DNA of 64,000 nucleotides, taken from positions 11,324,784 to 11,388,783 of the forward strand of contig CM121341.1 of assembly GCA_051530055.1 (NCBI GenBank), given 5' to 3'. Each line of letters starts with the position of its first letter. The first letter of the stretch is position 1. Under the pieces are notes generated by a model. It searched no databases. It saw nothing but the letters and a program-made list of their open reading frames with translations, and was not told the origin of the DNA. Shown piece after piece: positions 25,800 through 58,200 of this stretch. Made by a program: the position numbers and the translations under genes. The DNA is from Neoechinorhynchus agilis (taxonomy: Eukaryota; Animalia; Acanthocephala).

Positions 25800-27120
25800 A
25801 CATCGATCTCAGGGATTATCGAAAAAAGGGGCTTCTTCCTATATTGTGGATTTTACGTATGAAAGCAAGCGAACTATGGTGTTTTCGATTGAAATTAAAT
25901 TCTCCCATTGAACATTTCCTTGTAGTTTTTGTCAGGGATTATCGAAAAAAAGGGCTACTTCCTATATAGTGGATTGTAGGTACGAAAACTAGCGAACGGT
26001 GGCGTCTTCCAATATAAAGAAATGCTCCCATTGAACATTTCCTTGTTGTTTTTGTTAGGAATTATCGAAAAAGGGGCTTCTTCCTAAATTGTGGACTTTA
26101 GGTTCTAAGATAAGCGAACGATAGCGTCTTCCAATATAAAGAAATGCTCCCATTGAACATTTCCTTGTTGTTTTTGTTAGGAATTATCGAAAAAAGGGGC
26201 CTCCTCCTAAATTGTGGATTTTTGGGTTCTAAGATAAGCGAACGATGGCGTCTTTAAAAACAAAGAAATTCTCCCATTGAACATTTCTTTGTATTTATTG
26301 TTAGGAATTATCGAAAAAAAGGGGCCTCTTCCTAAATTGTGGATTTTTGGGTTCTAAGATAAGCGAACGATGGCGTCTTTAAAAACAACGAAATTCTCCC
26401 ATTGAACATTTCTTTGTAGTTATTGTTAGGAATTATCGAAAAAAGGGGCCTCCTTAAATTGTGGATTTTTGGGTTCTAAGATAAGCGAACGATGGCGTTT
26501 TCCAAAACAAACAAATTCTCCCATTGAACATTTCTTTGTAGTTATTGTTAGGAATTATCGAAAAAAGGGGCCTCCTCCTAAATTGTGGATTTTTGGTTCT
26601 AAGATAAGCGAACGATGGCGTCTTCCAAAACAAACAAATTCTCCCATTGAACATTTCTTTGTAGTTATTGTTAGGAATTATCGAAAAAAGGGGCCTCCTC
26701 CTAAATTGTGGATTTTAGGTTCTAAGATAAGCGAACGATAGCGTCTTCCAAAACAAAGAAATGCTTCCATTGAACATTTCCTTGTAATTTTTCTTGGGAA
26801 CTATCGAAAAAAGGGGCCTCCTCCTAAATTGTGGATTTTAGGTTCTAAGATAAGCGAACGATAGCGTCTTCCAAAACAAAAAAATGCTTCCATTGAACAT
26901 TTCCTTGTAATTTTTGTTAGGAATGACTTTTTCCTAAATCCCGAATTTTAGGTACTAAGATAAGCGAACGATAGCGTCTTCCAATATAAAGAAATGCTTC
27001 TAATGAACATTGAACATTTCCTTGTAGTTTTTGTCAGGGATTATCGAAAAAGGGGGCTTCTTCCTGAGTAGTATATTTTCAGGTTCTAAGATAAGCGAAC
27101 TACGGCGTCTTTTAATATAA
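25800..27120. repeat. ~123-bp satellite, about 10.5 copies, most homogeneous in the middle
   Basis: CATTGAAC anchors at 25906, 26029, 26151, 26275, 26400, 26522, 26645, 26768, 26891 (spacing 122-125). Confidence 0.95.
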
Positions 27121-30939: not shown

Positions 30940-31560
30940 TCCCACCACTCGAATGCAATCCTCAATTTAACCAGTAAATTGGAAAAATCGTAAAAAAAGC
31001 TTGCAAAAATCTTCTTAGGTTGCGTTCGAGTACGCATAAATTTCACTCCGACAACAAGCGTTCAAAACAGCAAAACTCGCTGCATATTTCTGTCAATCCT
31101 AAAAAATCTGTGGCAGAAAATAAGTTCACACTGGAAAGTAATTAAAGAATCAACGATTAAGATTTCGTCACTTTTATCTTTTTTTAATGATGAGAATTTA
31201 ATAACAGGCAATGTCAAAGATAAGATCACCTTTTAGTAAATAATCAATGACGAGATTAAGCAACAATCGAGGGACGTTCAAATCGGAGATGAATGCGGTT
31301 GTTGATTTTGGAGTGGATTACGGGTTCGGTTGGGTGAGAAGCTTCGGTCGAGTGAAAAAGTGGATGGTTATTGTTTGTAGGAGCGCTTGTAAGGTTGGGT
31401 CTTTCCTCAGGTTTATTTCGGGAAATGATTTCCGAGAAAATTAGGCATTATGGAAAAAGGAGTGGCTTAGCGAAAGAGCCAAAGGGATCTCTTTTATTAC
31501 TAACAAAGCATGGGTTAATTTCTCGTTTATTAAAAAGGATACATTCCGATCAAACTCTCT

Positions 31561-32336
31561 TCACTTCTTTAGTAGTTTTTGTAAAGCAGCGCGTTGTCCG
31601 GTCATTCGAGATTCGACCATTTCTGAACTATTCTTGATATTTGAAATAACAGAATTCTGTCGGTCGATCTCCTCGCCCATATTAGTAGCCAAACCTTTTA
31701 GTCGCGACAAGTACGATGACATGTCATCTAAAAACAGCAAGTATTTCTAATTGTTAAATCGAGTCCTTCAGACACACTCACTTAGATTTTGTTCAACCTC
31801 TTTCTCTCGATCAGATCCGGTTAGTGAACGAAAGGCGTTACCGTGACTAGATTTCGTCTGCAGTTTAAGCCAATAGACAACAGAAATCAATCACACTTAT
31901 CACCGCCAGGCACTGAAGCCGCCGCCATCGCGGATGATCGATTCACGTCTACGTTACCGGCACTCGCATTCAAATATTTACTAAGATTCGAATCGTTGCT
32001 TTTCGATGGAGTTAGTTTATTTTTGGATGATGTTCCAAAGATCGATTTTGTAGAACCGAACACTTTAGCTCCAAATGCTCCGAACGGACTCTTTAACTTT
32101 GAAATGTTCTTTTGAGTGGCACTCAACCCGGTGTCGATATGGCCCAACTTCTTATCAATCCTTTCCAAAGCCTCACCTTGCAAAATCAATTCCTTTGCAC
32201 TCTCAACTCCGACATCCTCGCTTTCGGCTAACATATTTAAAGCTCGCCGTGTACTGTCTAGCATACTGTCTTCCAACTCATTTTTCTTTATCGATATCGA
32301 ATATTGCTTATTATCTTCGTCGAATGGATTGGCCAT
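31561..32336 (-). CDS. SNAP29: SNAP29-like Qbc SNARE, three exons
   Basis: N-terminal MANPFDED (NPF motif). Qb helix DSMLDSTRRALNMLAESEDVGVESAKELILQGEALERID. Spliced Qc helix SDREKEVEQNL|NDMSSYLSRLKGLATNMGEEIDRQNSVISNI...LLKK*. First donor site uncertain. Confidence 0.88.
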
Positions 32337-32709
32337 ATCTTTAAGAAAAGAAGGAAGCAAAAAAAGAAATGAGCGTACGCAGACGTCTTTTTATGCGCGA
32401 AAATGAGACGAGGTTGTAAAAAGGAAACGTGAATAGGAATTTGATAAGTGACAACAAGAAAATGTAGAAAATTGACGGACTTCAATTAAAACGCTTTGAA
32501 TTCGACCAACAAGAAAACGAGCATAACTGACTTCTTAAAAAGAACATTAACACTTTTGTGTCAATCTTCATTAATCAAAGGAAACAGGCGATTACTTAAG
32601 CATCTATCATCCCCGCACTTCCGTGCTATTAGCCGTGCACCTTGATGGAGATTTTCGCTAAAGAACTCTCACTGCGAAAAACAGCTTCTTTACTTTCTCT
32701 CTGATATCG

Positions 32710-34655
32710 AAACATTTTAACTACCTGAAGAAGTCCTACGAAACGGACGAAATATTGTAAAAAAGAATTAATAAATCTCTAAACTAGACGAAATGAAATA
32801 CATCCATGAACAAATTCTTTACAGCAACCAAACAGATCCTTGGTTTATCTGTTTACTAAAAAAATCAAAATTGTAAACTGAGATTTCAGTGCGAATTAAA
32901 CACTTTTACAACCTGAAGAAGTTCTACGAAACGGACGAAATATTGTAAAAAAAGAATTAATAAATCTCTAAATCAGACGAAATAAAATACATCCATGAAC
33001 AAATTCTTTACAACAACCAAACAGATCCTTGGTTTATCTCTTTATTAAAAAAATCAAAACTGTGGACTGAGATTTCCAGTGCGGATTAAACACTTTTACA
33101 ACCTGAAGAAGTCCTACGAAAAGGACGAAATATTGTAAAAAAAGAATTAATAAATCTCTAAACCAGACGAAATGAAATACATCCATGAACAAATTCTTTA
33201 CAACAAAAAACAGATCCTTGGTTTATCTGTTTACTAAAAAAATCAAAATTGTAAACTAAGATTCCAGTGCGAATTAAACACTTTTACAACCTGAAGAAGT
33301 CCTACGAAACGGACGAAATATTGTAAAAAAGAATTAATAAATCTCTAAATCAGACGAAATAAAATACATCCATGAACAAATTCTTTACAACAACCAAACA
33401 GATCCTTGGTTTATCTCTTTATTAAAAAAATCAAAACTGTGGACTGAGATTTCCAGTGCGGATTAAACACTTTTACAACCTGAAGAAGTCCTACGAAAAG
33501 GACGAAATATTGTAAAAAAAGAATTAATAAATCTCTAAATCAGACGAAATGAAATACATCCATGAACAAATTCTTTACAACAACAAACAGATCCTTGGTT
33601 TATCTGTTTACTAAAAAAATCAAAATTGTAAACTGAGATTCCAGTGCGAATTAAACACTTTTACAACCTGAAGAAGTCCTACGAAACGGACGAAATATTG
33701 TAAAAAAGAATTAATAAATCTCTAAATCAGACGAAATAAAATACATCCATGAACAAATTCTTTACAACAACAAACAGATCCTTGGTTTATCTCTTTATTA
33801 AAAAATCAAAACTGTGGACTGAGATTTCCAGTGCGGATTAAACACTTTTACAACCTGAAGAAGTCCTACGAAAAGGACGAAATATTGTAAAAGAATTAAT
33901 AAATCTCTAAACCAGACGAAATGAAATACATCCATGAACAAATTCTTTACAACAAAAAACAGATCCTTGGTTTATCTGTTTACTAAAAAAATCAAAATTG
34001 TAAACTAAGATTCCAGTGCGAATTAAACACTTTTACAACCTGAAGAAGTCCTACGAAAGGACGAAATATTGTAAAAAAGAATTAATAAATCTCTAAATCA
34101 GACGAAATAAAATACATCCATGAACAAATTCTTTACAACAACCAAACAGATCCTTGGTTTATCTCTTTATTAAAAAAATCAAAACTGTGGACTGAGATTT
34201 GCGGTTAAACACTTTTACAACCTGAAGAAGTCCTACGAAAGGACGAAATATTGTAAAAAAAGAATTAATAAATCTCTAAATCAGACGAAATAAAATACAT
34301 CCATGAACAAATTCTTTACAACAACAAACAGATCCTTGGTTTATCTCTTTATTAAAAAAATCAAAACTGTGGACTGAGATTTCCAGTGCGGATTAAACAC
34401 TTTTACAACCTGAAGAAGTCCTACGAAAAGGACGAAATATTGTTACAAAAGGAATTAATAAATCTCTAAATCAGACGAAATGAAATACATCCATGAACAA
34501 ATTCTTTACAACAGCCAAACAGATCCTTGGTTTATCTGTTTATTAAAAAATCAAAATTATGGACTGACGTTCCAGTGCGGATTAAACACCTTTACAACCT
34601 GAAGAAGTCTTACAAAACGGGCGAAATATTGTCAAAAAAGGAATTAATAAATTTC
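32710..34655 (+). repeat. ~188-bp tandem array with A/B dimeric higher-order pattern; each unit holds a minimal type I hammerhead ribozyme motif (retrozyme-like satellite)
   Basis: Eleven CTGAAGA cores at 32725, 32913, 33103, 33291, 33480, 33668, 33855, 34040, 34222, 34410, 34599, each followed by A-GTCC(T)-loop-(A)GGAC-GAAA-TATT-GT. Variants CTGTTTACT...TTGTAAACT and CTCTTTATT...CTGTGGACT alternate. Confidence 0.9.
33094..33140 (+). ncRNA. Representative minimal type I hammerhead ribozyme of the 188-bp array
   Basis: TTTTACAA(C) CTGAAGA A GTCCT ACGAAA AGGAC GAAA TATT GTAAAA: canonical core, 5-bp stem II, palindromic AUAU stem III, stem I TTTTAC(AA)/(TT)GTAAAA. Cleavage triplet (AUU or AUA) is non-optimal and the stem I register is ambiguous. 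Confidence 0.7.
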
Positions 34656-35719
34656 TATATTACAAAATATATTAGAAATTCTTCAACTGCGCTTCAAAAT
34701 CAGAGCGTCCTACATTCACTTTCAAATGAGCGATTTAACCTTTATCCTGGCAATGGAATTTCATTTCTAAAAATTTGCCTTTTAAACCTCAACCTTCCCT
34801 ATTTTATATTGATTCTTTAACATTGACCGAAATTGGCAGAAATCGCGTCACGTCGTAGTCTGCGAGAAAAAATACTGGCAAAAAATGACAAAAACGAAAC
34901 CCCGTTGAGCCTGAGGTTTAAAAAACGTATCTTAAGGAATGAAGTTAACTCACATTTCCGGCTGATCCTGCTTATAACCTTTATTGGTTTCTTATGCTTA
35001 AAACCCTTTATTCTAAGTGTTGAAGTGAGTCGTTTTTCAAGGCTGATAGTTTTCCCTGGGCACACAGCCCAGGAACAAATTATTCGTCATGGACTTCAGC
35101 ATTTAGAATAGTGAGAAGAACCCTCTAAATCAATGGAATTCTTGAAAACATAGTCCTTTGATACGCCTTTCCTCTTGTCTTAACCCCTAGCAATTTCCGG
35201 TGCCACTAAGCAGTCGGTAATTGCTTGGAGTGTGCTACAAATAGATTGAAAAATTTTCGCGGGCTCATTTTACACCCGTTACCTAGGACTTGTACGGCTA
35301 AACACGATTGCGTGACAAAAGATGACGTACCGATGAAATAATCAAGTTTTCGAAAATGGTCACTTGAGCTGTTCTAATCGAAGAAGAAAATATTTTTTTT
35401 CGAGAGTTTTCGCCGACTTACGGCGTAAGCTTAGAAGTTGTTTCGCAAAGAAAAAGATCTTGCTTTCAGCATTTCAACATCCCCATTTTCGAACACTTAG
35501 ACTCTTAAATATGAATAGCTCCGGGGCGCGCACACACTCACACAATCCACCTCGACCAAATGAACGAAGGAAATCAAAGTAGTGATTTTAAAGTAAAGTA
35601 ATTGCACGTTGCTTCGTACTCGATCCAGCGGTCGGCGATAAGGCATTATGAAAAGGTCGTTTGATGACCCCTTAAGTATCTAAACATTTGCAAAGTTTTT
35701 AGATATCTCGTACGCGTCA

Positions 35720-38700
35720 TCTTTCAAAATATCTCAATACGTTTTATCCGGGGAGGGGATTATGATCAACACAATGCTTTTATCAAAAAGGATTTCCTCT
35801 CTCGCTCTTGATGATTAAAGAATGCTTAACAAACTGGAAAATGAGTCAGAACTCCAAAATGTGGTTCAAATACCTTCGAGAAATATTGGCAAAATGCCAT
35901 TAGGTAAAAACGATAGATCGCATTTTGATATTGAAGCACAAAAAGATTTCGAATATCGTTAAAGTGCGCTTCTTTAATCGATGACAAAAGAGCTTGGCGA
36001 TATACGACCACTTTTTTTCTATTATAACGCTAAAAATCTTTTATTTTCGAAATAATTACTGATGAGATGAGACTTCTAAATATCTCAATATGTTTTATCC
36101 GGGGATGGGGATTATGATCAACACAACGCTATTATCCCAAAGGATTTCCTCTCTCGCTCTTGATGATTAAAGAATGCTTAACAAACTGGAAAATAAGTCA
36201 GAACCCCAGAATGTGGTTCAAATGCCTTCAAGAATTATTGGCACAATGCCATTAGGTAAAAACGATGGATCGCATTTTGATATTGAAGCACAAAAAGATT
36301 TCGAATATCGCTAAAGTGCGCTTCTTTAATCGATGACAAAAGAGCTTGGCGATATACGACCACTTTTTTCAATTATAACGCTAAAAATCTTTTATTTTCG
36401 AAATAATGACTGATGAGATGAGACTTCTAAATATCTCAATATGTTTTATCCGGGGAAGGGGATTATGATCAACACAACGCTATTATCCCAAAGGATTCCC
36501 CTCTCGGTCTTGATGATTAAAGAATGCTTAACAAACTGGAAAATAAGTCAGAACCCCAGAATGTGGTTCAAATGCCTTCAAGAATTATTGGCACAATGCC
36601 ATTAGGTAAAAACGATGGATCGCATTTTGATATTGAAGCACAAAAAGATTTCGAATATCGCTAAAGTGCGCTTCTTTAATCGATGACAAAAGAGCTTGGC
36701 GATATACGACCACTTTTTTCAATTATAACGCTAAAAATCTTTTATTTTCGAAATAATGACTGATGAGATGAGACTTCTAAATATCTCAATATGTTTTATC
36801 CGGGGAAGGGGATTATGATCAACACAACGCTATTATCCCAAAGGATTCCCCTCTCGGTCTTGATGATTAAAGAATGCTTAACAAACTGGAAAATCAGTGC
36901 GAACTCCAAAATGTGGTTCAAATACAATCGAGAAATTTTGGCAAAATGCCATTAGGTAAAAACGATGGATCGCATTTTGATATTGAAGCACAAAAGATTT
37001 CGAATATCGTTCAAGTGCGCTTCTTTAATCGATGACAAAAGAGCTTGGCGATATACGACCACTTTTTTCAATTATAACGCTAAAAATCTTTTATTTTCGA
37101 AATAATTACTGATGAGATGTGACTTCTAAATATCTCAATACGTTTTATCCGGGGATGGGGATTATGATCAACATAACGCTATTATCCCAAAGGATTCCCT
37201 TCTCGGTCTAGATGATTAAAGAATGCTTAACAAACTGGAAAATAAGTCAGAACCCCAGAATGTGGTTCAAATGCCTTCAAGAATTATTGGCACAATGCCA
37301 TTAGGTAAAAACGATGGATCGCATTTTGATATTGAAGCACAAAAAGATTTCGAATATCGTTAAAGTTCGCTTCTTTAATCGATGACCAAAGAGTTTGGCG
37401 ATATACGACTACTTTTTTCAATTAAAACGCTAAAAATCTTTTATTTTCGAAATAATTACTGATGAGATGTGACTTCTAAATATCTCAATACGTTTTATCC
37501 GGGGATGGGGATTATTATCAACACAACGCTATTATCCCAAAGGATTCCCTTCTCGGTCTTGATGATTAAAGAATGCTTAACAAACTGGACAATAAGTCAG
37601 AACCCCAGAATGTGGTTCAAATGCCTTCAAGAATTATTGGACAATGCCATTAGGTAAAAATGATGGGTCGCATTTTAATATTGAAGCACAAAAAGATTTC
37701 GAATATCGTTAAAGTTCGCTTCTTTAATCGATGACCAAAGAGTTTGGCGATATACGACTACTTTTTTCAATTAAAACGCTAAAAATCTTTTATTTTCGAA
37801 ATAATTACTGATGAGATGAGACTTCTAAATATCTCAATACGTTTTATCCGGAAAGGGCATTATGATCAACACAACGCTATTATCCCAAAGGATTTCCTCT
37901 CTCGCTCTCGATGATTAAAGAATGCTTAACAAACTGGAAAATCAGTGCGAACTCCAAAATGTGATTCAAATACCTTCGAGAATTATTGGCAAATGCCATT
38001 AGGTAAAAAGATGGATCGCATTTTAATATTGAAGCACAAAAAGATTTCGAATATCGTTAAAGTTCGCTTCTTTAATCGATGACAAAGATTTGGCGATATA
38101 CGACTACTTTTTTCAATTATAACGCTAAAAATCTTTTATTTTCGAAATAATGACTGATGAGATGAGACTTCTAAATATCTCAATACGTTTTATCCGGGGA
38201 TGGGATTATGATCAACACAACGCTATTATCCCAAAGGATTTCCCCTCTCGCTCTTGATGATTAAAGAATGCTTAACAAACTGGAAAATCAGTGCGAACTC
38301 CAAAATGTGATTCAAATACCTTCGAGAAATATTGGCAAAATGCCATTAGGTAAAAAAGATGGGTCGCATTTTAATATTGAAGCACAAAAAGATTTCGAAT
38401 ATCGTTAAAGTGCGCTTCTTTAATCGATGACAAAAGAGTTTGGCGATATACGACTACTTTTTTCAATTATAACGCTAAAAATCTTTTATTTTCGAAATAA
38501 TGACTGATGAGATGAGACTTCTAAATATCTCAATACGTTTTATCCGGGGAGGGGATTATGATCAACACAACGCTATTATCCCAAAGGATTTCCTCTCTCG
38601 CTCTTGATGATTAAAGAATGCTTAACAAACTGGAAAATAAGTGCGAACTCCAAAATGTGATTCAAATACCTTCGAGAAATATTGGCACAATGCCATTAGG

Positions 38701-41700
38701 TAAAAATGATGGGTCGCATTTTAATATTGAAGCACAAAAAGATTTCGAATATCGTTAAAGTGCGCTTCTTTAATCGATGACAAAAGAGCTTGGCGATATA
38801 CGACTACTTTTTTCAATTATAACGCTAAAAATCTTTTATTTTCGAAATAATGACTGATGAGATGAGACTTCTAAATATCTCAATACGTTTTATCCGGGGA
38901 TGGGAATTATGATCAACACAACGCTATTATCCCAAAGGATTTCCCCTCTCGCTCTCGATGATTAAGGAATGCTTAACAAACTGGAAAATCAGTGCGAACT
39001 CCAAAATGTGATTCAAATACCTTCGAGAAATATTGGCAAAATGCCATTAGGTAAAAATGATTGATCGCATTTTAATATTGAAGCACAAAAGATTTCGAAT
39101 ATCGTTAAAGTGCGCTTCTTTAATCGATGACAAAAGAGTTTCGCGATATACGACTACTTTAATCAATTATAACGCCAAAAATCTTTTATTTTCGAAATAA
39201 TTACCGATGAGATGAGACTTCTAAATATCTCAATACGTTTTATCCGGGAAGGGGATTATGATCAACAAAACGCTATTATCCCAGAGGATTTCCTCTCTCG
39301 CACTTGATGATTAAAGAATGCTTAACAAACTGGAAAATCAGTGCGAACTCCAAAATGTGGTTCAAATACCATCGAGAAATTTTGGCAAAATGCCATTAGG
39401 TAAAAACGACGGATCGCATTTACATATTGAAGCACAAAAAGATTTCGAATATCGCTAAAGTTCGCTTCATTAATCGATGACCAAGGAGTTTGGCGATATA
39501 CGACTACTTTTTTCAATTATAACGCTAAAAATCTTTTATTTTCGAAATAATTACTGATGAGATGAGACTTCTAAATATCTCAATACGTTTTATCCGGGGA
39601 AGGGGATTAAGATCAACACAACGCTATAATCCCAAAGGATTTCCCCAATCGCTCTCGATGATTAAAGAATGCTTAACAAACTGGAAAATCAGTGCGAACT
39701 CCAAAATGTGATTCAAATACCTTCGAGAAATATTGGCAAAATGCCATTAGGTAAAAACGATGGATCGCATTTTAATATTGAAGCACAAAAAGATTTCGAA
39801 TATCGTTAAAGTTCGCTTCTTTAATCGATGACCAAAGAGTTTGGCGATATACGACTACTTTTTTCAATTATAACGCTAAAAATCTTTTATTTTCGAAATA
39901 ATGACTGATGAGATGAGACTTCTAAAAATCTCAATACGTTTTATCCGGGGATGGGGATTATGATCAACACAACGCTATTATCCCAAAGGATTTCCTCTCG
40001 CTCTCGATGATTAAAGAATGCTTAACAAACTGGAAAATAAGTGCGAACTCCAAAATGTGGTTCAAATACCTTCGAGAAATATTGGCAAAATGCCATTAGG
40101 TAAAAAAGATGGGTCGCATTTTTATATTGAAGCACAAAAAGATTTCGAATATCGTTAAATTGCGCTTCTTTAATCGATAACAAAAGAGCTTGGCGATATA
40201 CGACTACTTTTTCAATTATAACGCTAAAAATCTTTTATTTTCGAAATAATTACCGATGAGATGAGACTTCTAAATATCTCAATACGTTTTATCCGGGAAG
40301 GGGATTATGATCAACACAACGCTATTATCCCAAAGGATTTCCTCTCTCGCTCTTGATGATTAAAGAATGCTTAACAAACTGGAAAATAAGTGCGAACTCC
40401 AAAATGTGATTCAAATACCTTCGAGAAATATTGGCAAAATGCCATTAGGTAAAAATGATGGGTCGCATTTTAATATTGAAGCACAAAAGATTTCGAATAT
40501 CGTTAAAGTGCGCTTCTTTAATCGATGACAAAGGAGCTTGGCGATATACGACTACTTTTTTCAATTATAACGCTAAAAATCTTTTATTTTCGAAATAATG
40601 ACTGATGAGACTTCTAAATATCTCAATACGTTTTATCCGGGGATGGGGATTATGATCAACACAACGCTATTATCCCAAAGGATTTCCTCTCTCGCTCTTG
40701 ATGATTAAAGAATGCTTAACAAACTGGAAAATAAGTTCGAACTCCAAAATGTGGTTCAAATACCTTCGAGAAATATTGGCAAAATGCCATTAGGTAAAAA
40801 TGATGGGTCGCATTTTAATATTGAAGCACAAAAGATTTCGAATATCGTTAAAGTGCGCTTCTTTAATCGATGACAAAAGAGTTTGGCGATATACGACTAC
40901 TTTTTTCAATTATAACGCTAAAAATCTTTTATTTTCGAAATAATGACTGATGAGATGAGACTTCTAAATATCTCAATACGTTTTATCCGGGGATGGGGAT
41001 TATGATCAACACAACGCTATTATCCCAAAGGATTTCCTCTCTCGCTCTTGATGATTAAAGAATGCTTAACAAACTGGAAAATAAGTGCGAACTCCAAAAT
41101 GTGGTTCAAATACCTTCGAGAAATATTGGCAAAATGCCATTAGGTAAAAATGATGGGTCGCATTTTAATATTGAAGCACAAAAGATTTCGAATATCGTTA
41201 AAGTGCGCTTCTTTAATCGATGACAAAAGAGTTTGGCGATATACGACTACTTTTTTCAATTATAACGCTAAAAATCTTTTATTTTCGAAATAATTACCGA
41301 TGAGATGAGACTTCTAAATATCTCAATACGTTTTATCCGGGGAAGCGGAATATGATCAACAAAACGCTATTATCCCAAAGGATTTCCTCTATCGCTCTTG
41401 ATGATTAAAGAATGCTTAACAAACTGGAAAATAAGTCAGAACCCCAGAATGTGATTCAAATACCTTCGAAAATTATTGGCAAAATGCCATTAGGTAAAAA
41501 AGATGGGTCGCATTTTAATATTGAAGCACAAAAAGATTTCGAATATCGTTAAAGTGCGCTTCATTAATCGATGACCAAAGAGTTTGGCGATATACGACTA
41601 CTATCTTCAATTATAACGCTATAAATTCTTTATTTTCGAAATAATGACTGATGAGATGAGACTTCTAAATATCTCAATACGTTTTACCCTGGGATGGGGA

Positions 41701-44010
41701 TTATGATCAACACAACGCTGTTATCCCAAAGGATTTGCTCTCTCGCTCTTGATGATTAAGGAATGCTTAACAAATTTTAAAAATCAGTTCGAACTCCAAA
41801 ATGTGGTTCAAATACCTTCGAGAAATATTGGCACAATGCCATTAGATAAAAATGATGGGTCGAATTTTAATATTGAAGCACAAAAAGATTTCGAATATCG
41901 TTAAAGTGCGCTTCTTTAATCGATGACAAAAGAGTTTGGCGATATACGACTACTTTTTTCAATTATAACGCTAAAAATCTTTTATTTTCGAAATAATTAC
42001 CGATGAGATGATACTTCTAAATATCTCAATACGTTTTATCCGGGGAGGGGATTATGATCAACACAACGCTATTATCCCAAAGGATTCCCCTCTCGCTCTC
42101 GATGATTAAAGAATGCTTAACAAACTGGAAAATAAGTGCGTACTCCAAAATGTGATTCAAATACCTTCGAGAAATATTGGAAAATGCCATTAGGTAAAAA
42201 AGATGGGTCGCATTTTAATATTGAAGCACAAAAAGATTTCGAATATCGTTAAAGTTCGCTTCTTTAATCGATGACCAAAGAGTTTGGCGATATACGACTA
42301 CTTTTTTCAATTATAACGCTAAAAATCTTTTATTTTCGAAATAATTACTGATGAGATGTGACTTCTAAATATCTCAATACGTTTTATCCGGGGATGGGAT
42401 TATGATCAACACAACGCTATTATCCCAAAGGATTCCTCTCGCTCTGATGATTAAAGAATGCTTAAAAACTGGAAAATAGTGAACCCAAATGTTTCAAATC
42501 CTTAGAATTTGGAAATGCATTAGGTAAAGAGTCGTTTTTATTGAAGCGATTCGAATTCGTATTTTTACGATAAGTTGGTTGTTTTTTGTTTTTGTTGGGC
42601 TTAAATCTCATAGTTTTATCCGGGGTTATGATCAACACAACGCTTTATCCCAAAGGATTTCTCTCTCGCTCTTGATGATTAAGAATGCTTAAATAAAATA
42701 GTGAACTCCAAATGTGTTCAAATACCTTCGAGAAATATTGGCAAATGCCATTAGTAAAAAGAGGGTCGTTTTATATTGAAGCACAAAAGATTTCGAATAT
42801 CGTTAATGCGCTTCTTTAATCGATACAAAGAGTTGGCGATATACGACTACTTTTTCAATTATAACGCTAAAATCTTTTATTTTCGAAATAATACGATGAG
42901 ATGAACTTCTAAAATCTCAATACGTTTTATCCGGAGGGATTATGATCAAACAACGCTATATCCCAAAGGATTTCCCCTCTCGCTTGATGATTAAGAATGC
43001 TTAACAAATGGAAAATAGTCGACTCCAAAATGTGATTCAATACCTTCGAGAATATTGGCAAAATGCTTAGGTAAAAAGATGGGTCGCATTTTATATTGAA
43101 CACAAAAAGATTTCGAATATCGTTAAATCGCTTTTTAATCGATGACAAAGAGTTTGGCGATATACGACTACTTTTTTCAATTATAACGCTAAAAATCTTT
43201 TATTTTCGAAATAATTACTGATGAGATGTGACTTCTAAATATCTCAATACGTTTTATCCGGGGATGGGATTATGATCAACACAACGCTATTATCCCAAAG
43301 GATTTCCTCTCTCGCTCTTGATGATTAAAGAATGCTTAAAAACCTGGAAAATCGGTCAGAACTCCAGAACGTGGTTCAAATACCTTTGAGAAATATTGGC
43401 AAAATGTCATTAGGTAAAAAAGATGGGTCGCATTTTAATATTGAAGCACAAAAAGATTTCGAATATCGTTAAAGTGCGCTTCTTTAATCGATGACCAAAG
43501 AGTTTGGCGATATACGACTACTTTTTTCAATTATAACGCTATAAATCCTTTATTTTCGAAATAATGAATGATGAGATGAGACTTCTAAATATCTCAATAC
43601 GTTTTATCCGGGGATGGGGTTTATGATCAACACAATGCTTTTATCAAAAAGGATTTCCTCTCTCGCTCTTGATGATTAAAGAATGCTTAACAAACTGGAA
43701 AATGAGTCAGAACTCCAAAATGTGGTTCAAATACCTTCAAGAAATATTGGCAAAATGCCATTAGGTAAAAACGATGGATCGCATTTTAATATTGAAGCAC
43801 AAAAAGATTTCGAATATCGTTAAAGTTCGCTTCATTAATCGATGACAAAAGAGCTTGGCGATATACGACTACTTTTTTCAATTATAACGCTAAGAATCTT
43901 TTATTTTCGAAACAATGACTGATGAGATGAATCGTCCTCTTTCGAAATATCTCGATACTTTTTATCCGGGGATGGAGATTATGATTACGACAACTCTTTC
44001 ATCTTGAAGG
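35720..44010 (+). repeat. ~350-bp satellite, about 24 copies, each with a degenerate hammerhead-like motif
   Basis: ATCTCAAT anchors at 35731, 36082, 36433, 36783, 37132, 37482 and onward (349-351 spacing). The array begins and ends with the same ~90-bp module (ATATCTCAATACGTTTTATCCGGGG...CCCAAAGGATTTCC). Confidence 0.96.
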
Positions 44011-47900: not shown

Positions 47901-49229
47901 AAACGATTGATATATCTCAAACGAAGAACTTTAAATATCCAAATGCTTTAAAACATTTCTTCCATTGAAATTTTCTGATTTGTACTCTTTTTCAGACAAT
48001 GTCGTTAGAAGAAGGTGACCGGTATTTTTCTGCGAGGGCTAATGGTTCCTATGAGTTTTCGAAGTCTCCCAGCCACTTTATCGTTTTCGGCGTCACATTC
48101 ATTTCGCCATAAATACCGCATTGGCGATACACGTCAACAGAAGGTAGGACCGAACACAGCGCTCCTAATGGTCGCAACCAAATGTCTACGCTGCTACATA
48201 AGAGAATGAGATGCTTTTGTGTTTGTCACACTCCATCTCGATGCCCAGATGCAGCGGCATGGACTCAGTGGAAGTCTTTTTTGTTGACTTTGCACAGAAG
48301 TGAGCGCTCAGTGAAAACTCACGACACACGGTGAGGAGGAAGAGGAGGAAAGTGTGAAGGAGCGCTGTGTGCGAACGCGTAAAATATCACTCCGTCGTGC
48401 ACGGAAGGCGAAAATGAAAGAATCCAATGTCGAATAAAGAATGGGCGCGATTTCAAATGACGAAGTTCATCGCGCTTGTCAAAGTCATTGGCGGTGAGTT
48501 CAAACGTAATTGAAAATCTTTCGACGTAAAAGTGATCGTCGTTTGTGTTTAATCGAGAGAGAGGCGACGCTTCCCACTTCGAAGGAACTTCAATTTTAAA
48601 TCAGAGATCTTGCAGTGCAACAAAACCAATAAAGAATTCAATAGAACAAAGAAAAGTGACCCCAATTTTAACTTTTTAACGAATTCCCCACAGCACGCTT
48701 ACCAATTTTACGTTTTTTAAATCACCTCTCATTGGGTTTTCGGTTATCTCAACAAAATCTCGTACCCGAATGGTGTCTGGATCCAATCAATTCGCGGAAA
48801 TGAACAATGTTCTACTGCAATTGAAAAAGATTTTACAGAAGGAATCTCGAAATCCCTGACATTCGCCGAAATAATCGGTCTGCATTTAATAAAAGACGCT
48901 GTTGTCAATGTCACCGTACCGACCGGCATAACAATAAAAGGTTTAATTAATGAACAAAAAGAGGAACCTTTACCTCTGGATCACCGTGAACCTTTGGAGT
49001 GGGGAAAGTTGGTGGTTATTGTTTGAAGGAGAGATTGGGTTCGAAGTTAAAGTTTAAATTTGAGAATGATACAAGCAGTGGTTCATTTCCCTTGCAGTGG
49101 CATTTAAACAGTTTTACTGCTCAACTTTACATCGAAGGAAATTATTAGCTCGAAAAATATTGATCGCACGAGTAGCCTTCGAGTTTTGGTTTGAAATCAT
49201 GTTCTGTTTGTTTACCTAAAAGATTACCA

Positions 49230-52200
49230 GAGATCCAACTTTGTTTTTATATATCTGATAAATAACGAAATTTATTGAATCAGATATTTCGGAAGCATAA
49301 TTATTGAAATACGAACAACCTTCTGGAATGGCACACGAGATTGTGCTTCTGAAATCAATTGAATTCAATAAATCACTTCATTTTAACCGCCATATAAAAA
49401 CATGAATAATTTGATCTTCAAAGAGATCCAACTTTGTTTTTATATATCTGATAAATGACGAAATTTATTGAATCAGATATTTCGGAAGCATAATTATTGA
49501 AATACGAACAATCTTCTGGAATGGCACACGAGATTGTGCTTCTGAAATCGATTGAATTCAATAAATCACTTCATTTTACCCGCCATATAAAAACATGAAT
49601 AATTTGATCTTCAAAGAGATCCAACTTTGTTTTTATATATCTGATAAATAACGAAATTTATTGAATCAGATATTTCGGAAGCATAATTATTGAAATACGA
49701 ACAACCTTCTAGAATGGCACACGAGATTGTGCTTCTGGAAATAAATTGAATTCAATAAATCACTTCGTTTTACCCGCCATATAAAAACATGAATAATTTG
49801 ATCTTCAAAGAGATCCAACTTTGTTTTTATATATCTGATAAATAACGAAATTTATTGAATCAGATATTTCGGAAGCATAATTATAGAAATACGAACAACC
49901 TTCTAGAATGGCACACGAGATTGTGCTTCTGAAATAAATTTAATTCAATAAATCACTTCATTTTACCCGCCATATAAAAACATGAATAATTTGATCTTCA
50001 AAGAGATGCAACTTTGCTTTTATATATCTGATAAATAACGAAATTTATTGAATCAGATATTTCGGAAGCATAATTATTGAAATACGAACAACCTTCTGGA
50101 ATGGCCCACGAGATTGTGCTTCTGAAACCAATCGAATTCAATAAATCACTTCATTTACCCGCCATATAAAAACATGAATTTGATCTTCAAAGAGATCCAA
50201 TTTTGTTTTTATATATCTGATAAATGTCGAAATTTATTGAATCAGATATTTCGGAAGCATAATTATTGAAATACGAACAACCTTCTGGAATGGCACACGA
50301 GATTGTGCTTCTGAAATCAATTGAATTCAATAAATCACTTCATTTTACCCCCATATAAAAACATGAATAATTTGATCTTCAAAGAGATCCAACTTTGTTT
50401 TTATATATATGATAAATGACGAAATTTATTGAATCAGATATTTCGGAAGCATAATTATTGAAATACGAACAACCTTCTGGAATGGCACACGAGATTGTGC
50501 TTCTGAAATCAATTGAATTCAATAAATCACTTAATTTTACCCGCCATATAAAAACATGAATAATTTGATCTTCAAAGAGATCCAACTTTGTTTTTATAAA
50601 TCGGATAAATGACGAAATTTATTGAATCAGATATTACGGAAGCATAATTATTGAAATACGAACAACCTTCTGGAATGGCACACGAGATTGTGCTTCTGAA
50701 CATTGAATTCACAATAAATCACTTCATTTACCCGCCATATAAAAACATGAATAATTTGATCTTCAAAGAGATCCAACTTTGTTTTTATATATCTGATAAA
50801 TGACGAAATTTATTGAATCAGATATTTCGGAAGCATAATTATTGAAATACGAACAACCTTCTGGAATGGCACACGAGATTGTGCTTCTGAAATAAATTGA
50901 ATTCAATAAATCACTTCGTTTTACCCGCCATATAAAAACATGAATAATTTGATCTTCAAAGAGATCCAACTTTGTTTTTATATATCTGATAAATAACGAA
51001 ATTTATTGAATCAGATATTTCGGAAGCATAATTATAGAAATACGAACAACCTTCTGGAATGGCACACGAGATTGTGCTTCTGAAATCGATTGAATTCAAT
51101 AAATCACTTCATTCTACCCGCCATATAAAAACATGAATAATTTAATCTTCAAAGAGATCCAACTTTGTTTTTATATATCTGATAAATAACGAAATTTATT
51201 GAATCAGATATTTCGGAAGCATAATTATTGAAATACGAACAACCTTCTGGAATGGCACACGAGATTGTGCTTCTGAAATCGATTGAATTCAATAAATCAC
51301 TTCATTTTACCCGCCATATAAAAACATGAATAATTTAATCTTCAAAGAGATCCAACTTTGTTTTTATATATCTGATAAATAACGAAATTTATTGAATCAG
51401 ATATTTCGGAAGCATAATTATTGAAATACGAACAACCTTCTGGAATGGCACACGAGATTGTGCTTCTGAAATCGATTGAATTCAATAAATCACTTCATTT
51501 TACCCGCCATATAAAAACATGAATAATTTGATCTTCAAAGAGATCCAACTTTATTTTTATATATCTGATAAATAACGAAATTTATTGAATCAGATATTTC
51601 GGAAGCATAATTATTGAAATACGAACAACCTTCTGGAATGGCACACGAGATTGTGCTTCTGAAATCAATTCGAATTCAATAAATCACTTCATTCTACCCG
51701 CCATATAAAAACATGAATAATTTAATCTTCAAAGAGATCCAACTTTGTTTTTATATAACAGATAAATGACGAAATTTATTGAATCAGATATTTCGGAAGC
51801 ATAATTATTGAAATACGAACAACCTTCTGGAATGGCACACGAGATTGTGCTTCTGAAATAAATTGAATTCAATAAATCACTTCATTTTACCCGCCATATA
51901 AAAACATGAATAATTTGATCTTCAAAGAGATCCAACTTTGTTTTTATATATCTGATAAATAACGAAATTTATTGAATCAGATATTTCGGAAGCATAATTA
52001 TTGAAATACGAAAAACCTTCTAGAATGGCACACGAGATTGTGCTTCTGAAATAAATTGAATTCAATAAATCACTTCGTTTTACCCGCCATATAAAAACAT
52101 GAATAATTTGATCTTCAAAGAGATCCAACTTTGTTTTTATATATCTGATAAATAACGAAATTTATTGAATCAGATATTTCGGAAGCATAATTATAGAAAT

Positions 52201-55200
52201 ACGAACAACCTTCTAGAATGGCACACGAGATTGTGCTTCTGAAATCGATTGAATTCAATAAATCACTTAATTTTACCCACCATATAAAAACATGAATAAT
52301 TTGATCTTCAAAGAGATCCAACTTTGTTTTTATAAATCGGATAAATGACGAAATTTATTGAATCAGATATTTCGGAAGCATAATTATTGAAATACGAACA
52401 ACCTTCTGGAATGGCACACGAGATTGTGCTTCTGAAATCAATTGAATTCAATAAATCACTTCATTTTACCCGCCATATAAAAACATGAATAATTTGATCT
52501 TCAAAGAGATCCAATTTTGTTTTTATATATCTGATAAATGTCGAAATTTATTGAATCAGATATTTCGGAAGCATAATTATTGAAATACGAACAACCTTCT
52601 GGAATGGCACACGAGATTGTGCTTCTGAAATCAATTGAATTCAATAAATCACTTCATTTTACCCCCCATATAAAAACATGAATAATTTGATCTTCAAAGA
52701 GATCCAACTTTGTTTTTATATATATGATAAATGACGAAATTTATTGAATCAGATATTTCGGAAGCATAATTATTGAAATACGAACAACCTTCTGGAATGG
52801 CACACGAGATTGTGCTTCTGACATCAATTGAATTCAATAATCACTTAATTTTACCCACCATATAAAAACATGAATAATTTGACTTTCAAAGAGATCCCAC
52901 AACTTTGTATTTTTTGCAAAGTCTGGATAAATGACGAAATTTATTGAATCAGATATTTCGGAAGCATAATTATTGAAATACGAACAACCTCTGGAATGGC
53001 ACACGAGATTGTGCCACCAGTTCTAATTGAATTCAATAAATCACTTCATTTTACCCCGCCATATAAAAACATGAATAATTTGATCTTCAAAGAGATCCAA
53101 CTTTGTTTTTATATATCTGATAAATGACGAAATTTATTGAATCAGATATTTCGGAAGCATAATTATTGAAATACGAACAACCTTCTGGAATGGCCCACGA
53201 GATTGTGCTTCTGAAACCAATCGAATTCAATAAATCACTTCATTTACCCGCCATATAAAAACATGAATAATTTGATCTTCAAAGAGATCCAACTTTGTTT
53301 TTATATATCTGATAAATGACGAAATATATTGAATCAGATATTTCGGAAGCATAATTATTGAAATACGAACAACCTTCTGGAATGGCACACGAGATTGTGC
53401 TTCTGAAATCAATTGAATTCAATAAATCACTTCATTTTACCCGCCATATAAAAACATGAATAATTTGATCTTCAAAGAGATCCAATTTTGTTTTTATATA
53501 TCCGATAAATGACGAAATTTATTGAATCAGATATTTCGGAAGCATAATTATTGAAATACGAACAACCTTCTGGAATGGCACACGAGATTGTGCTTCTGAA
53601 ATCGATTGAATTCAATAAATCACTTCATTTTACCCGCCATATAAAAACATGAATAATTTGATCTTCAAAGAGATCCAACTTTGTTTTTATATATCTGATA
53701 AATAACGAAATTTATTGAATCAGATATTTCGGAAGCATAATTATTGAAATACGAACAACCTTCTGGAATGGCACACGAGATTGTGCTTCTGAAATCAATT
53801 GAATTCAATAAATCACTTCATTCTACCCGCCATATAAAAACATGAATAATTTAATCTTCAAAGAGATCCAACTTTGTTTTTATATATCTGATAAATGACG
53901 AAATTTATTGAATCAGATATTTCGGAAGCATAATTATTGAAATACGAACAACCTTCTGAATGGCACACGAGATTGTGCTTCTGAAATCAATTGAATTCAA
54001 TAAATCACTTCATTTTACCCGCCATATAAAAACATGAATAATTTTATCTTCAAAGAGATCCAACTTTGTTTTTATATATCTGATAAATAACGAAATTTAT
54101 TGAATCAGATATTTCGGAAGCATAATTATAGAAATACGAACAACCTTCTAGAATGGCACACGAGATTGTGCTTCTGAAATCAATTGAATTCAATAAATCA
54201 CTTCATTCGCTATATAAAAACATGAATAATTTAATCTTCAAAGAGATCCAACTTTGTTTTTATATATCTGATAAATGACGAAATTTATTGAATCAGATAT
54301 GCCGGAAGCATAATTATTGGAAATACGAACAACCTTCTAGAATGGCACACGAGATTGTGCTCTGGAAATAAATTGAATTCAATAAATCACTTCGTTTTAC
54401 CCGCCATATAAAAACATGAATAATTTGATCTTCAAAGAGATCCAACTTTGTTTTTATATATCTGATAAATAACGAAATTTATTGAATCAGATATTTCGGA
54501 AGCATAATTATAGAAATACGAACAACCTTCTAGAATGGCACACGAGATTGTGCTTCTGAAATAAATTGAATTCAATAAATCACTTCATTTTACCCGCCAT
54601 ATAAAAACATGAATAATTTGATCTTCAAAGAGATCCAACTTTGTTTTTATATATCTGATAAAAAACGAAATTTATTGAATCAGATATTTCGGAAGCATAA
54701 TTATTGAAATACGAACAACCTTCTAGAATGGCACACGAGATTGTGCTTCTGAAATAAATTGAATTCAATAAATCACTTCGTTTTACCCGCCACATAAAAA
54801 CATGAATAATTTGATCTTCAAAGAGATCCAACTTTGTTTTTATATATCTGATAAATAACGAAATTTATTGAATCAGATATTTCGGAAGCATAATTATAGA
54901 AATACGAACAACCTTCTAGAATGGCACACGAGATTGTGCTTCTGAAATAATTGAATTCAATAAATCACTTCATTTTACCCGCCATATAAAAACATGAATA
55001 ATTTGATCTTCAAAGAGATCCAACTTTGTTTTTATATATCTGATAAATGACGAAATTTATTGAATCAGATATTTCGGAAGCATAATTATTGAAATACGAA
55101 CAACCTTCTGGAATGGCACACGAGATTGTGCTTCTGAAATCGATTGAATTCAATAAATCACTTCATTTTACCCGCCATATAAAAACATGAATAATTTGAT

Positions 55201-58200
55201 CTTCAAAGAGATCCAACTTTGTTTTTATATATCTGATAAATAACGAAATTTATTGAATCAGATATTTCGGAAGCATAATTACTGAAATACGAACAACCTT
55301 CTAGAATGGCACACGAGATTGTGCTTCTGAAATAAATTGAATTCAATAAATCACTTCGTTTTACCCGCCATATAAAAACATGAATAATTTGATCTTCAAA
55401 GAGATCCAACTTTGTTTTTATATATCTGATAAATAACGAAATTTATTGAATCAGATATTTCGGAAGCATAATTATTGAAATACGAACAACCTTCTGGAAT
55501 GGCACACGAGATTGTGCTTCTGAAATCAATTGAATTCAATAAATCACTTCATTTTACCCGCCATATAAAAACATGAATAATTTGATCTTCAAAGAGATCC
55601 AATTTTGTTTTTATATATCTGATAAATAACGAAATTTATTGAATCAGATATTTCGGAAGCATAATTATAGAAATACGAACAACCTTCTAGAATGGCACAC
55701 GAGATTGTGCTTCTGAAATCGATTGAACTCAATAAATCACATCGTTTTACCCGCCATATAAAAACATGAATAATTTGATCTTCAAAGAGATCCAATTTTG
55801 TTTTTATATATCTGATAAATGACGAAATTTATTGAATCAGATATTTCGGAAGCATAATTATTGAAATACGAAAAACCTTCTAGAATGGCACACGAGATTG
55901 TGCTTCTGAAATCGATTGAACTCAATAAATCACATCGTTTTACCCGCCATATAAAAACATGAATAATTTGATCTTCAAAGAGATCCCATTTTTGTTTTTA
56001 TATATCTGATAAATGACGAAATTTATTGAATCAGATATTTCGGAAGCATAATTATTGAAATACGAAAAACCTTCTAGAATGGCACACGAGATTGTGCTTC
56101 TGAAATAAATTGAATTCAATAAATCACTTCGTTTTACCCGCCATATAAAAACATGAATAATTTGATCTTCAAAGAGATCCAATTTTGTTTTTATATATAT
56201 GATAAATGACGAAATTTATTGAATCAGATATTTCGGAAGCATAATTATTGAAATACGAACAACCTTCTGGAATGGCCCACGAGATTGTGCTTCGAAAACA
56301 ATTGAATTCAATAAATCACTTAATTTGACCCACCATATAAAAACATGAATAATTTGATCTTCAAAGAGATCCAACTTTGTTTTTATAAATCGGATAAATG
56401 ACGAAATTTATTGAATCAGATATTTCGGAAGCATAATTATTGGAAATACGAACAACCTTCTGGAATGGCACACGAGATTGTGCTTCTGAAATCAATTGAA
56501 ATTCAATAAATCACTTCATTTTACCCGCCATATAAAAACATGAATAATTTGATCTTCAAAGAGATCCAACTTTGTTTTTATATATCTGATAAATGACGAA
56601 ATTTATTGAATCAGATATTTCGGAAGCATAATTATTGGAATACGAACAACCTTCTGGAATGGCACACGAGATTGTGCTTCTGAAATCAATTGAATTCAAT
56701 AAATCACTTCATTTTACCCGCCATATAAAAACATGAATAATTTGATCTTCAAAGAGATCCAACTTTGTTTTTATATATCTGATAAATGACGAAATTTATT
56801 GAATCAGATATTTCGGAAGCATAATTAGCTGGAAATACGAACAACCTTCTGGAATGGCACGAGATTGTGCTTCTGAAATCAATTGAATTCAATAAATCAC
56901 TTCATTTTACCCGCCATATAAAAACATGAATAATTTGATCTTCAAAGAGATCCAATTTTGTTTTTATATATCTGATAAATGACGAAATTTATTGAATCAG
57001 ATATTTCGGAAGCATAATTATTGAAATACGAATAACCTTCTGGAATGGCACACGAGATTGTGCTTCTGAAATCAATTGAATTCAATAAATCACTTCATTT
57101 TACACGCCACATAAAAACGTGAATAATTTGATCTTCAAAGAGATCCAACTTTGTTTTTATATATCTGATAAATAACGAAATTTATTGAATCAGATATTTC
57201 GGAAGCATAATTATTGAAATACGAACAACCTTCTAGAATGGCACACGAGATTGTGCTTCTGAAATAAATTGAATTCAATAAATCACTTTCTGGAATGGCA
57301 CACGAGATTGTGCTTCTGAAATCAATTGAATTCAATAAATCACTTCATTTTACCCGCCATATAAAAACATGAATAATTTGATCTTCAAAGAGATCCAACT
57401 TTGTTTTTATATATCTGATAAATGACGAAATTTATTGAATCAGATATTTCGGAAGCATAATTATTGAAATACGAACAACCTTCTGGAATGGCACACGAGA
57501 TTGTGCTTCTGAAATCAATTGAATTCAATAAATCACTTCATTTTACCCGCCATATAAAAACATGAATAATTTGATCTTCAAAGAGATCCAACTTTGTTTT
57601 TATATATCTGATAAATAACGAAATTTATTGAATCAGATATTTCGGAAGCATAATTATTGAAATACGAACAACCTTCTGGAATGGCACACGAGATTGTGCT
57701 TCTGAAATCAATTGAATTCAATAAATCACTTCATTTTACCCGCCATATAAAAACATGAATAATTTGATCTTCAAAGAGATCCAACTTTGTTTTTATATAT
57801 CTGATAAATGACGAAATTTATTGAATCAGATATTTCGGAAGCATAATTATTGAAATACGAACAACCTTCTGGAATGGCACACGAGATTGTGCTTCTGAAA
57901 TCAATTGAATTCAATAAATCACTTCATTTTACCCGCCATATAAAAACATGAATAATTTGATCTTCAAAGAGATCCAACTTTGTTTTTATATATCTGATAA
58001 ATGACGAAATTTATTGAATCAGATATTTCGGAAGCATAATTATTGAAATACGAACAACCTTCTGGAATGGCACACGAGATTGTGCTTCTGAAATCAATTG
58101 AATTCAATAAATCACTTCATTTTACCCGCCATATAAAAACATGAATAATTTGATCTTCAAAGAGATCCAACTTTGTTTTTATATATCTGATAAATAACGA

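Follow-up and report, generated by a model that had tools for sequence, protein, structure and literature searches.

A satellite array of the acanthocephalan Neoechinorhynchus agilis with a minimal hammerhead motif of the Penelope-like element type in every unit

Introduction

Does a satellite whose every unit resembles a small self-cleaving ribozyme carry true hammerhead motifs, and if so, where do they come from and what may become of the RNA copied from them? The question is raised by an array of 189-bp repeats in the genome of the acanthocephalan Neoechinorhynchus agilis. The array lies in a stretch of 64,000 nt (assembly GCA_051530055.1, contig CM121341.1, positions 11,324,784 to 11,388,783 of the forward strand), which is called the window here and whose own numbering is used unless contig 1 (C1) is named. 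An earlier note on this DNA had proposed a minimal type-I hammerhead with a palindromic stem III in each monomer, with nearest relatives among the hammerheads of newt satellite 2, Schistosoma Sm-alpha or the retrozymes.

Minimal hammerhead ribozymes (min-HHRs) were defined in the pseudo-long terminal repeats (pLTRs) of Penelope-like elements (PLEs) (Cervera & de la Peña 2014, Mol Biol Evol 31:2941, PMC4209133). Four recurrent traits are given there: a single genome contains many consensus families, which differ by compensatory changes; an extra base separates A9 from G10.1; the G10.1-C11.1 pair is conserved; and 15.2-16.2 is palindromic, as is loop 3 where such a loop is present (PMC4209133). 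In tandem repeats, hammerheads with a palindromic stem III are believed to be active as dimers. The genome paper of N. agilis mentions no hammerheads, PLEs, satellites or trans-splicing (PMC12690905). The analysis presented here confirms the array as a real example of the known PLE-type hammerhead repeat, and not as a new kind of element.

Results

Anatomy of the array

Tandem Repeats Finder places the array on the plus strand at 32710-34657, with 10.4 units of a 189-bp period and 92% matches. A period of 377 bp fits better (5.2 copies, 95% matches), and the array is a higher-order repeat of 377 bp in which A and B units alternate. It has a GC content of ~0.33 and no open reading frame (ORF), and it stands in a window that is AT-rich and rich in other satellites. 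Dispersed copies of the repeat all terminate in ..TTCTTTACAAC, and homology with these 3′ ends extends the last unit of the array by a diverged tail.

In a regex scan CTGAAGA is found 11 times, once per unit, and is followed in 11 of 11 units by one A, a helix II of 4-5 bp, GAAA and TATTGT (Table 1). The motif is thus intact in every unit, as had been claimed from the sequence, and further details of that first description hold equally well: the helix II variants GTCC/GGAC, GTTC/GGAC (unit 2) and GTCT/GGGC (unit 11) are all found and are all pairable, changes of length are confined to loop II, which is shortened from 28 to 27 nt in the motifs at 34040 and 34222, and AATAAA stands shortly 3′ of the motif, with its onset 16 nt past the predicted cut site in array units. 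An AAUAAA-like hexamer (AATAAA, GATAAA or ATATAAA) is also found 10-16 nt past the predicted cut in most subfamilies of the motif in this genome. The recurrence of the hexamer suggests that the pLTR may direct 3′ end formation as well.

The triplet of the array is AUU, and both the A and the B unit types carry the same AUAU palindrome. The alternation of the two types, which according to the earlier note might favour dimeric cleavage between neighbours, therefore has no bearing on it.

Table 1. Features of the window. Bit scores are those of R1, the hammerhead motif model of this study; cut sites are predicted.
Feature	Positions	Strand	CTGAAGA start	Cut site	R1 bits	Remarks
min-HHR 1	32713-32768	+	32725	32756|32757	70.3	
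min-HHR 2	32901-32956	+	32913	32944|32945	65.8	helix II GUUC/GGAC, U-G wobble
min-HHR 3	33091-33146	+	33103	33134|33135	71.7	
min-HHR 4	33279-33334	+	33291	33322|33323	69.8	
min-HHR 5	33468-33523	+	33480	33511|33512	71.7	
min-HHR 6	33656-33711	+	33668	33699|33700	69.8	
min-HHR 7	33843-33898	+	33855	33886|33887	69.4	
min-HHR 8	34028-34082	+	34040	34070|34071	65.3	loop II one nt shorter
min-HHR 9	34210-34264	+	34222	34252|34253	65.8	loop II one nt shorter
min-HHR 10	34398-34453	+	34410	34441|34442	64.8	
min-HHR 11	34587-34642	+	34599	34630|34631	54.1	helix II GUCU/GGGC, two wobbles
Diverged tail of last unit	to ~34690	+				homology with 3′ ends of dispersed copies
Second PLE remnant	7842-8478					two inverted min-HHRs around a GIY-YIG-like open frame
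min-HHR of second remnant	7842-7897	-			40.1	
min-HHR of second remnant	8423-8478	+			30.5	
GIY-YIG-like open frame	8110-8349	-				read by eye from ..GVYVIPCLDCKTMCIGQT..
SNAP-25/29-family SNARE, first exon	31887-32338	-				ATG 32336; acceptor AG 32340-32339; N-terminal NPF

Genome-wide pattern and covariation of the motif

The array alone cannot settle whether its motif is a hammerhead, because the motif is conserved no better than the rest of the unit and has no match in Rfam. In the alignment of the units 9 of 51 columns are variable inside the motif and 27 of 140 outside it (Fisher p = 1), and no signal of selection within the array is found in that alignment. The ~15 strictly required core positions vary in none of the 11 units, and this invariance is marginal evidence for selection (an estimate of ~0.04 from column variability).

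No hammerhead family of Rfam is found at E<=10, either on 31000-36500 (5.5 kb) or on 33075-33165 (91 nt). The earlier note had named the lack of a covariance-model hit among the results that would refute its proposal, and in that formal sense the check went against it, yet such a result is expected for a PLE variant without helix III. Between GAA and H17 the array has only the tetramer A-U-A-U, with no loop and thus no helix III hairpin. This, together with the extra base after A9, accounts for the silence of Rfam, which is taken as a limit of the models and not as an absence of the hammerhead, and which does not refute the hammerhead reading.

The core pattern CTGANGA-N-GNCC-N(4-12)-GGNC-GAAA was searched on both strands of the 46.2-Mb genome, with the reversed pattern as control. 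The pattern has 594 matches (298 + 296), compared with 0 + 0 for the control, and R1 matched 150 of the 150 candidates scored. In nearly all of the 100 matches listed, the two positions of helix II that the pattern leaves free complement each other (GTCC/GGAC, GGCC/GGCC, GACC/GGTC). A DNA search of the worm's own assembly, which has three large contigs, shows that this repeat forms three more arrays in the neighbourhood, on contig 1, as well as dozens of dispersed pieces of ~110 nt that consist of the motif and its tail only, often as head-to-head inverted pairs.

Alignment A1 comprises 50 distinct copies from ~50 loci and was scored for covariation on a specified structure. The score, in which the pairing of helix II is partly imposed by the selection of copies, is 0.446, compared with 0.139 +/- 0.013 for shuffles (0 of 500 reach 0.446) and 0.06-0.11 for slid partners. 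Neither the helix I pairs nor the tetramer after GAA were used for selecting the copies. Pair 1.1-2.1 is CG in 24 copies, AU in 17 and UA in 4, and pair 1.2-2.2 is AU in 18, GC in 16, CG in 3 and UA in 2; helix II position 2 displays UA 25, GC 13 and AU 8. A15.1-U16.1 is kept in 48 of the 50 copies, and pair 15.2-16.2 is UA in 27 and AU in 18. The tetramer after GAA is AUAU in 27 and AAUU in 19 of 54 copies and is palindromic in 85%, while position 17 (54 copies) is U 39, C 10, A 4 and G 1, which satisfies the NUH rule. The CUGANGA and GAAA boxes, found in type-I order in all 11 units, are invariant in A1, where the closing pair G10.1-C11.1 is GC 47 and GU 3 of 50. A9 and G10.1 are always separated by one unpaired base (A 44, G 5, C 4, U 1).

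The covariation in A1 and the bases at position 17 give the register GAA / A-U-A-U / U17 / cut / G1.1. In unit 3 this register puts the predicted cut at 33134|33135, in accord with the site expected earlier at about 33133-33135. Covariation supports the pairs G1.1-C2.1 and U1.2-A2.2 stacked directly on the core; beyond these first two pairs, the pairing of helix I is not above control (frequencies 0.30-0.59, compared with 0.27-0.49 shuffled). The stem I first suggested, TTTTAC/GTAAAA, can pair, but it leaves a 3-nt bulge beside the core and is not favoured by the comparative data. A distal AAAAG/CUUUU pairing may follow after an internal loop in helix I. RNAalifold on A1 recovers helix II alone; helix I is too short for energy-based prediction. 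An alternative register with a GUA or GUC triplet, a 2-bp helix III (A15.1-U16.1 and U-G) and the loop AUU was rejected: helix I then fails, and the subfamilies GAAA-AUUC, GAAA-AUUU and GAAA-AUUA do not fit, whereas the register with the 4-nt palindrome and H17 fits all. The covariation across ~50 distinct copies thus backs a minimal type-I hammerhead with a palindromic stem III in each monomer and establishes the membership of the motif.

Link to Penelope-like elements

The motif displays all four min-HHR traits of PMC4209133, and many motif families with covariation and compensatory changes are present within this one genome. A six-frame search of the genome gives at least 145 GIY-YIG matches. 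Loci L057, L033 and L053 each have a GIY-YIG frame whose end is followed, at a distance of ~25-45 nt, by a hammerhead of the same orientation. At locus L059 an open frame of 826 aa with RVT_1 (E 4.6e-12) is flanked by two hammerheads in direct repeat, and the frame has a GIY-YIG match just below the Pfam cut-off (22.0 vs 22.6 bits). The subfamily closest to the array is characterised by GTCC..GGAC and a tail ..AATTAATAAAT.. The link of the array itself is through its motif and ~55 nt of tail, which are homologous to L055 and similar copies. In L055 the motif overlaps, at its start, a GIY-YIG match of the six-frame search; a Pfam scan of the 181-aa open frame just upstream of that motif gave no match. 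The head-to-head inverted pairs and partial tandems found here fit the insertion structures of PLEs, which include partial tandems and inverted 5′-truncated copies, also in the acanthocephalan Pomphorhynchus laevis (PMC8557442). The motif is a genome-wide PLE feature and is not special to this satellite. The closest relative is the PLE min-HHR (PMC4209133), with its extra nt after A9, and not the newt, Sm-alpha or retrozyme hammerheads that had been named at first.

Other tandem arrays of min-HHRs, with periods of ~116, 415-430 and 279 nt, are found at C1:4362958-4363681, C1:5368067-5371094, C1:1453701-1458521 and C1:1856996-1858406. The units listed for the 415-430-nt array all contain, ~40-90 nt past the motif, the first half of a GIY-YIG domain as well.

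The sister arrays of the 189-bp repeat are located at C1:11.09-11.31 Mb. Their flanks are unrelated and their 3′ terminus, ..TTCTTTACAAC, is common to all, so they represent separate insertions of monomers to multimers. Segmental duplication as their origin was rejected, as blastn finds no homology between the flanks. The window array is the youngest and largest among them.

Spliced leader and hammerhead

Transcript data consist of assembled Logan contigs from four small runs of one study, whose kind as RNA is only guessed by the tool; they were mapped on 32000-33090. In two runs the contigs over the first exon of the neighbouring SNARE gene stop at 32338 with a loose end of 21 nt. In mRNA sense this end reads ..ATATTTAAAAACTTACAAGCA, and it is joined at the AG acceptor. 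Its last 18 nt, followed by GT, are found at 13 genomic sites. Three of these were read and continue GTAAGTATTGG with conserved flanks, in the manner of spliced-leader (SL) RNA genes (L064-L066, around position 1501). On this sequence evidence the worm appears to have a spliced leader.

At least 148 genomic sites carry the 3′ part of the leader (..AAAACUUACAAGCA) with CUGANGA 2-8 nt further on, compared with 0 in the control; examples are C1:943116-943140, C1:6913739-6913766 and C1:972435-972457. The junction is exactly where unspliced pLTRs read UUUUAG, and this holds in at least six subfamilies. This UUUUAG acceptor of the pLTRs marks the 5′ edge of helix I, with 2-8 nt between it and CUGANGA. 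Since the leader is fused at the acceptor in 148 copies, trans-spliced hammerhead RNAs appear to have been reverse-transcribed into the genome many times. The intron of Penelope in Drosophila virilis ends at the same place, at helix I (PMC4209133), and a coupling of leader and hammerhead would be the trans-splicing counterpart of that intron. The junctions tip the balance slightly towards a coupling of the PLE hammerhead to SL trans-splicing, in which the retrotransposition intermediates would be capped RNAs, spliced to the leader, that begin at the hammerhead.

The array itself is without the acceptor AG (..CUUUUACAAC, compared with ..CUUUUAGAC in related pLTRs). If the coupling is true, the array would be a derivative that lost the acceptor by a change of AG to AC. 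The 22 nt before the core were also considered as a decayed spliced leader and rejected, as they are closer to the unspliced pLTR form ..ACCUUUUACAAC in L016. No report that links spliced leaders with PLEs or hammerheads was found in the literature searched, nor one of trans-splicing in acanthocephalans, which is not proof of novelty in either case.

Expression and the neighbouring SNARE gene

Contigs of low depth (3-8) cover array units, including the tandem joint ("goes back 190"), and contigs of related hammerhead loci reach a depth of up to 183. Provided that these runs are RNA, the region of the array is thus represented at a low level. Over the neighbouring SNARE exon the contig depth is 350-545.

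The SNARE gene was named from a PDB sequence search (SNAP-25, E 4.6e-9; SNAP-29, E 9.9e-9), and its N-terminal NPF is as in SNAP-29; a Pfam scan gave no name for it. The ATG is 374 bp from the array, much as the ~370 bp first given for a SNAP29 start. A promoter shared by this gene and the array had been suggested, and this is unsupported: the spliced leader is joined to the mRNA of this gene 2 nt short of the ATG, and its transcript start therefore lies further right, upstream of the ATG, possibly within the array and antisense to the motif. The gene is context only and is not part of the element.

Just to the left of the array, short contigs of a depth of up to 3457 from RNA-like runs match 32650-32700 with ~4 mismatches. 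They probably represent an abundant RNA from a related sequence elsewhere; Rfam gives no match at 32650-32700.

Elsewhere in the window there is a second PLE remnant (Table 1). The 350-bp satellite at 35723-43999 has weak R1 matches, one per unit (17-19 bits, E 0.08-0.27). None of the satellites at 25811-27111 (123 bp x 10.6), 49229-59040 (193 bp x ~51) and 2-652 (81/162 bp) matches the hammerhead model.

Discussion

Favoured explanation and its rivals

The array is probably a tandem repeat that stems from the pLTR or 3′ region of a PLE, with one min-HHR per unit that would act as a dimer. The parts of this proposal differ in strength. Judged by its sequence, the repeat is very likely of the PLE-type min-HHR kind, while self-cleavage of its RNA in vivo, which is argued by analogy, is a tentative proposal and would be somewhat doubtful.

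In the proposed mechanism each unit would provide a helix I of two covarying pairs (G1.1-C2.1, U1.2-A2.2), CUGAAGA, one unpaired base, a helix II of 4-5 bp with G10.1-C11.1, GAAA, A15.1-U-A-U16.1 without loop 3, and U17 as the cut-site base. A plus-strand transcript would span at least two units, so that the AUAU stretches of neighbouring motifs could form a 4-bp helix III with each other and thereby a double hammerhead, in which each motif would cut after U17 (e.g., 33134|33135). Cleavage would release monomers of 188-189 nt with 5′-OH and 2′,3′-cyclic phosphate ends. These might be ligated to circles, for example by tRNA ligase, and monomers or circles might be copied in trans by the reverse transcriptase (RT) of a PLE. 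The proposal is based on the dimeric behaviour of hammerheads, which is established (Forster et al. 1988; PMC4209133).

Several observations weigh against an active role of the array. In vitro, PLE min-HHRs show only low cleavage as dimers or trimers (PMC4209133), and here helix III would consist of four A-U pairs only, with a suboptimal AUU triplet. The 189-nt RNA from cut to cut folds no better than shuffles (z -0.51; minus strand -0.24), and a search for a rod-like retrozyme fold of the monomer was negative for both strands. In the older sister arrays deletions or a broken helix II affect most motifs, much as one would expect of a mobile element's dead copies, and the genomic copies are thus not under lasting selection; the 11 intact motifs of the window may simply reflect the young age of the array. 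The Logan contigs give no strand, ends or cleavage, and the one long contig that continues without mismatch from the SNARE exon into unit 1, as far as 32880, may represent an outron in antisense. To be counted on the same side are the equal conservation inside and outside the motif, the silence of Rfam, and the share of helix II pairing in A1 that stems from the selection of copies.

The array might also be an inert relic. In that case the PLE hammerhead would be present by descent, the satellite would have been amplified at the DNA level by unequal exchange, and the motifs would be intact only because the array is young; there would be no plus-strand transcription or no cutting, and the repeat would have no RNA life cycle of its own. 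Besides the equal conservation, the decay in older sister arrays and the weak fold of the monomer RNA, this explanation draws on the 377-bp higher-order repeat, whose 95-99% identity is what recent homogenisation at the DNA level typically produces, on the loss of the pLTR splice acceptor AG in the array, and on the contrast in contig depth between the units and the neighbouring exon. However, the same multimer is found at at least four loci whose flanks are unrelated but whose 3′ terminus is shared, and this suggests that copies were inserted and that local slippage was not the only process. The invariance of the ~15 strictly required core positions and the depth of contigs from related hammerhead loci, in runs only guessed to be RNA, also speak against a relic, and this explanation is considered unlikely.

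The terminal inverted repeat (TIR) of a DNA transposon or of a miniature inverted-repeat transposable element (MITE) should also be considered, in which case the inverted pairs would be the TIRs and the hairpin a site for transposase. The many dispersed copies that form inverted pairs 30-100 bp apart are in keeping with this. Their arms, however, point outward from a shared 5′ junction, which is the structure of inverted 5′-truncated copies of PLEs (PMC8557442); copies are found ~25-45 nt after GIY-YIG frames, and one frame with RT and GIY-YIG is flanked by direct copies. Moreover, 148 copies begin with the spliced leader, which is explicable only by an RNA intermediate. A TIR or MITE origin is thus hardly probable. 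Least probable of all is a chance resemblance, in which the monomer of an AT-rich satellite would by accident have CUGANGA...GAAA on the two sides of a short hairpin: the lack of an Rfam match and the uninformative conservation within the array would allow it, but it is already contradicted by the pattern control (594 matches vs 0) and by compensatory changes in three helices across subfamilies, and it is at odds with an H17 that is non-G in 53 of 54 copies and with the PLE open frames that the motif adjoins.

With a PLE-derived hammerhead repeat as the preferred reading, N. agilis joins the animals whose genomes are seeded by PLE-type min-HHRs, with at least 594 core motifs in 46 Mb. Several motif families have expanded into satellites, of 116, 189, ~280 and ~415-430 bp. 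Rfam-based screens miss this whole class of hammerheads. A compact genome with many young and diverse copies is well suited to the question of whether min-HHRs cut in vivo and what role they have in PLEs, and the leader-to-hammerhead junctions make this question more tractable. The coupling to the leader across the family is somewhat more interesting than the array itself, and if it is true, it offers a new handle on why PLEs keep their hammerheads.

Comparison with known hammerhead systems

The array is most similar to the PLE min-HHRs of PMC4209133, with which it shares the type-I order, the CUGANGA and GAAA boxes, a short helix I, the unpaired nt between A9 and G10.1, the G10.1-C11.1 pair, palindromic 15.x/16.x positions and the lack of loop 3. 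A palindrome at 15.x/16.x without a loop 3 is the reason to expect a dimeric helix III. Both sets also occur in the pLTRs of elements with RT and GIY-YIG, which here applies to relatives of the array, and in tandem or inverted arrangements. Helix II is 7-8 bp in the Schistosoma PLE families (PMC4209133), whereas here it is mostly 4-5 bp with a loop of 6-8 nt (6 bp in the L059 family). N7 is almost always A in N. agilis, the array is without an ORF, and many relatives carry a trans-spliced leader, which PMC4209133 does not mention.

The non-LTR retrozymes of animals (Cervera & de la Peña 2020, NAR 48:5054, PMC7229834), whose derivation from PLEs has been proposed (bioRxiv 10.64898/2026.07.22.740005), likewise have AT-rich tandem units of 170-400 bp with a type-I hammerhead in each and no coding capacity. 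They too form multimers of varying length at several loci, and dependence on PLE machinery has been proposed for them (PMC7229834). However, their hammerheads are canonical, with contacts between loops 1 and 2 and a short helix III hairpin, and the present motif is the minimal variant; no loop contacts of this type were found here between helices I and II, as helix I has no conserved pairing or loop beyond its first two pairs. Retrozymes also give abundant, highly self-paired circular RNAs (PMC7229834), whereas the unit RNA of the array has no unusual degree of structure (z -0.5).

Newt satellite 2, Schistosoma Sm-alpha and Dolichopoda pDo500 (RF00163) resemble the array as tandem or SINE-like repeats with type-I hammerheads that have a weak helix III and are active as dimers. 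They differ in having a real helix III hairpin (1-2 bp and a loop) and no extra base after A9, and they are recognised by the Rfam model Hammerhead_1, which does not recognise the motif described here. An extra A between A9 and G10.1 is reportedly tolerated in the plus-strand hammerhead of chrysanthemum chlorotic mottle viroid (CChMVd), a natural hammerhead of proven activity (De la Peña & Flores 2001). The extra nt of CChMVd (+) is at the same core position as that of the array, but it belongs to a viroid type-III hammerhead with full helices.

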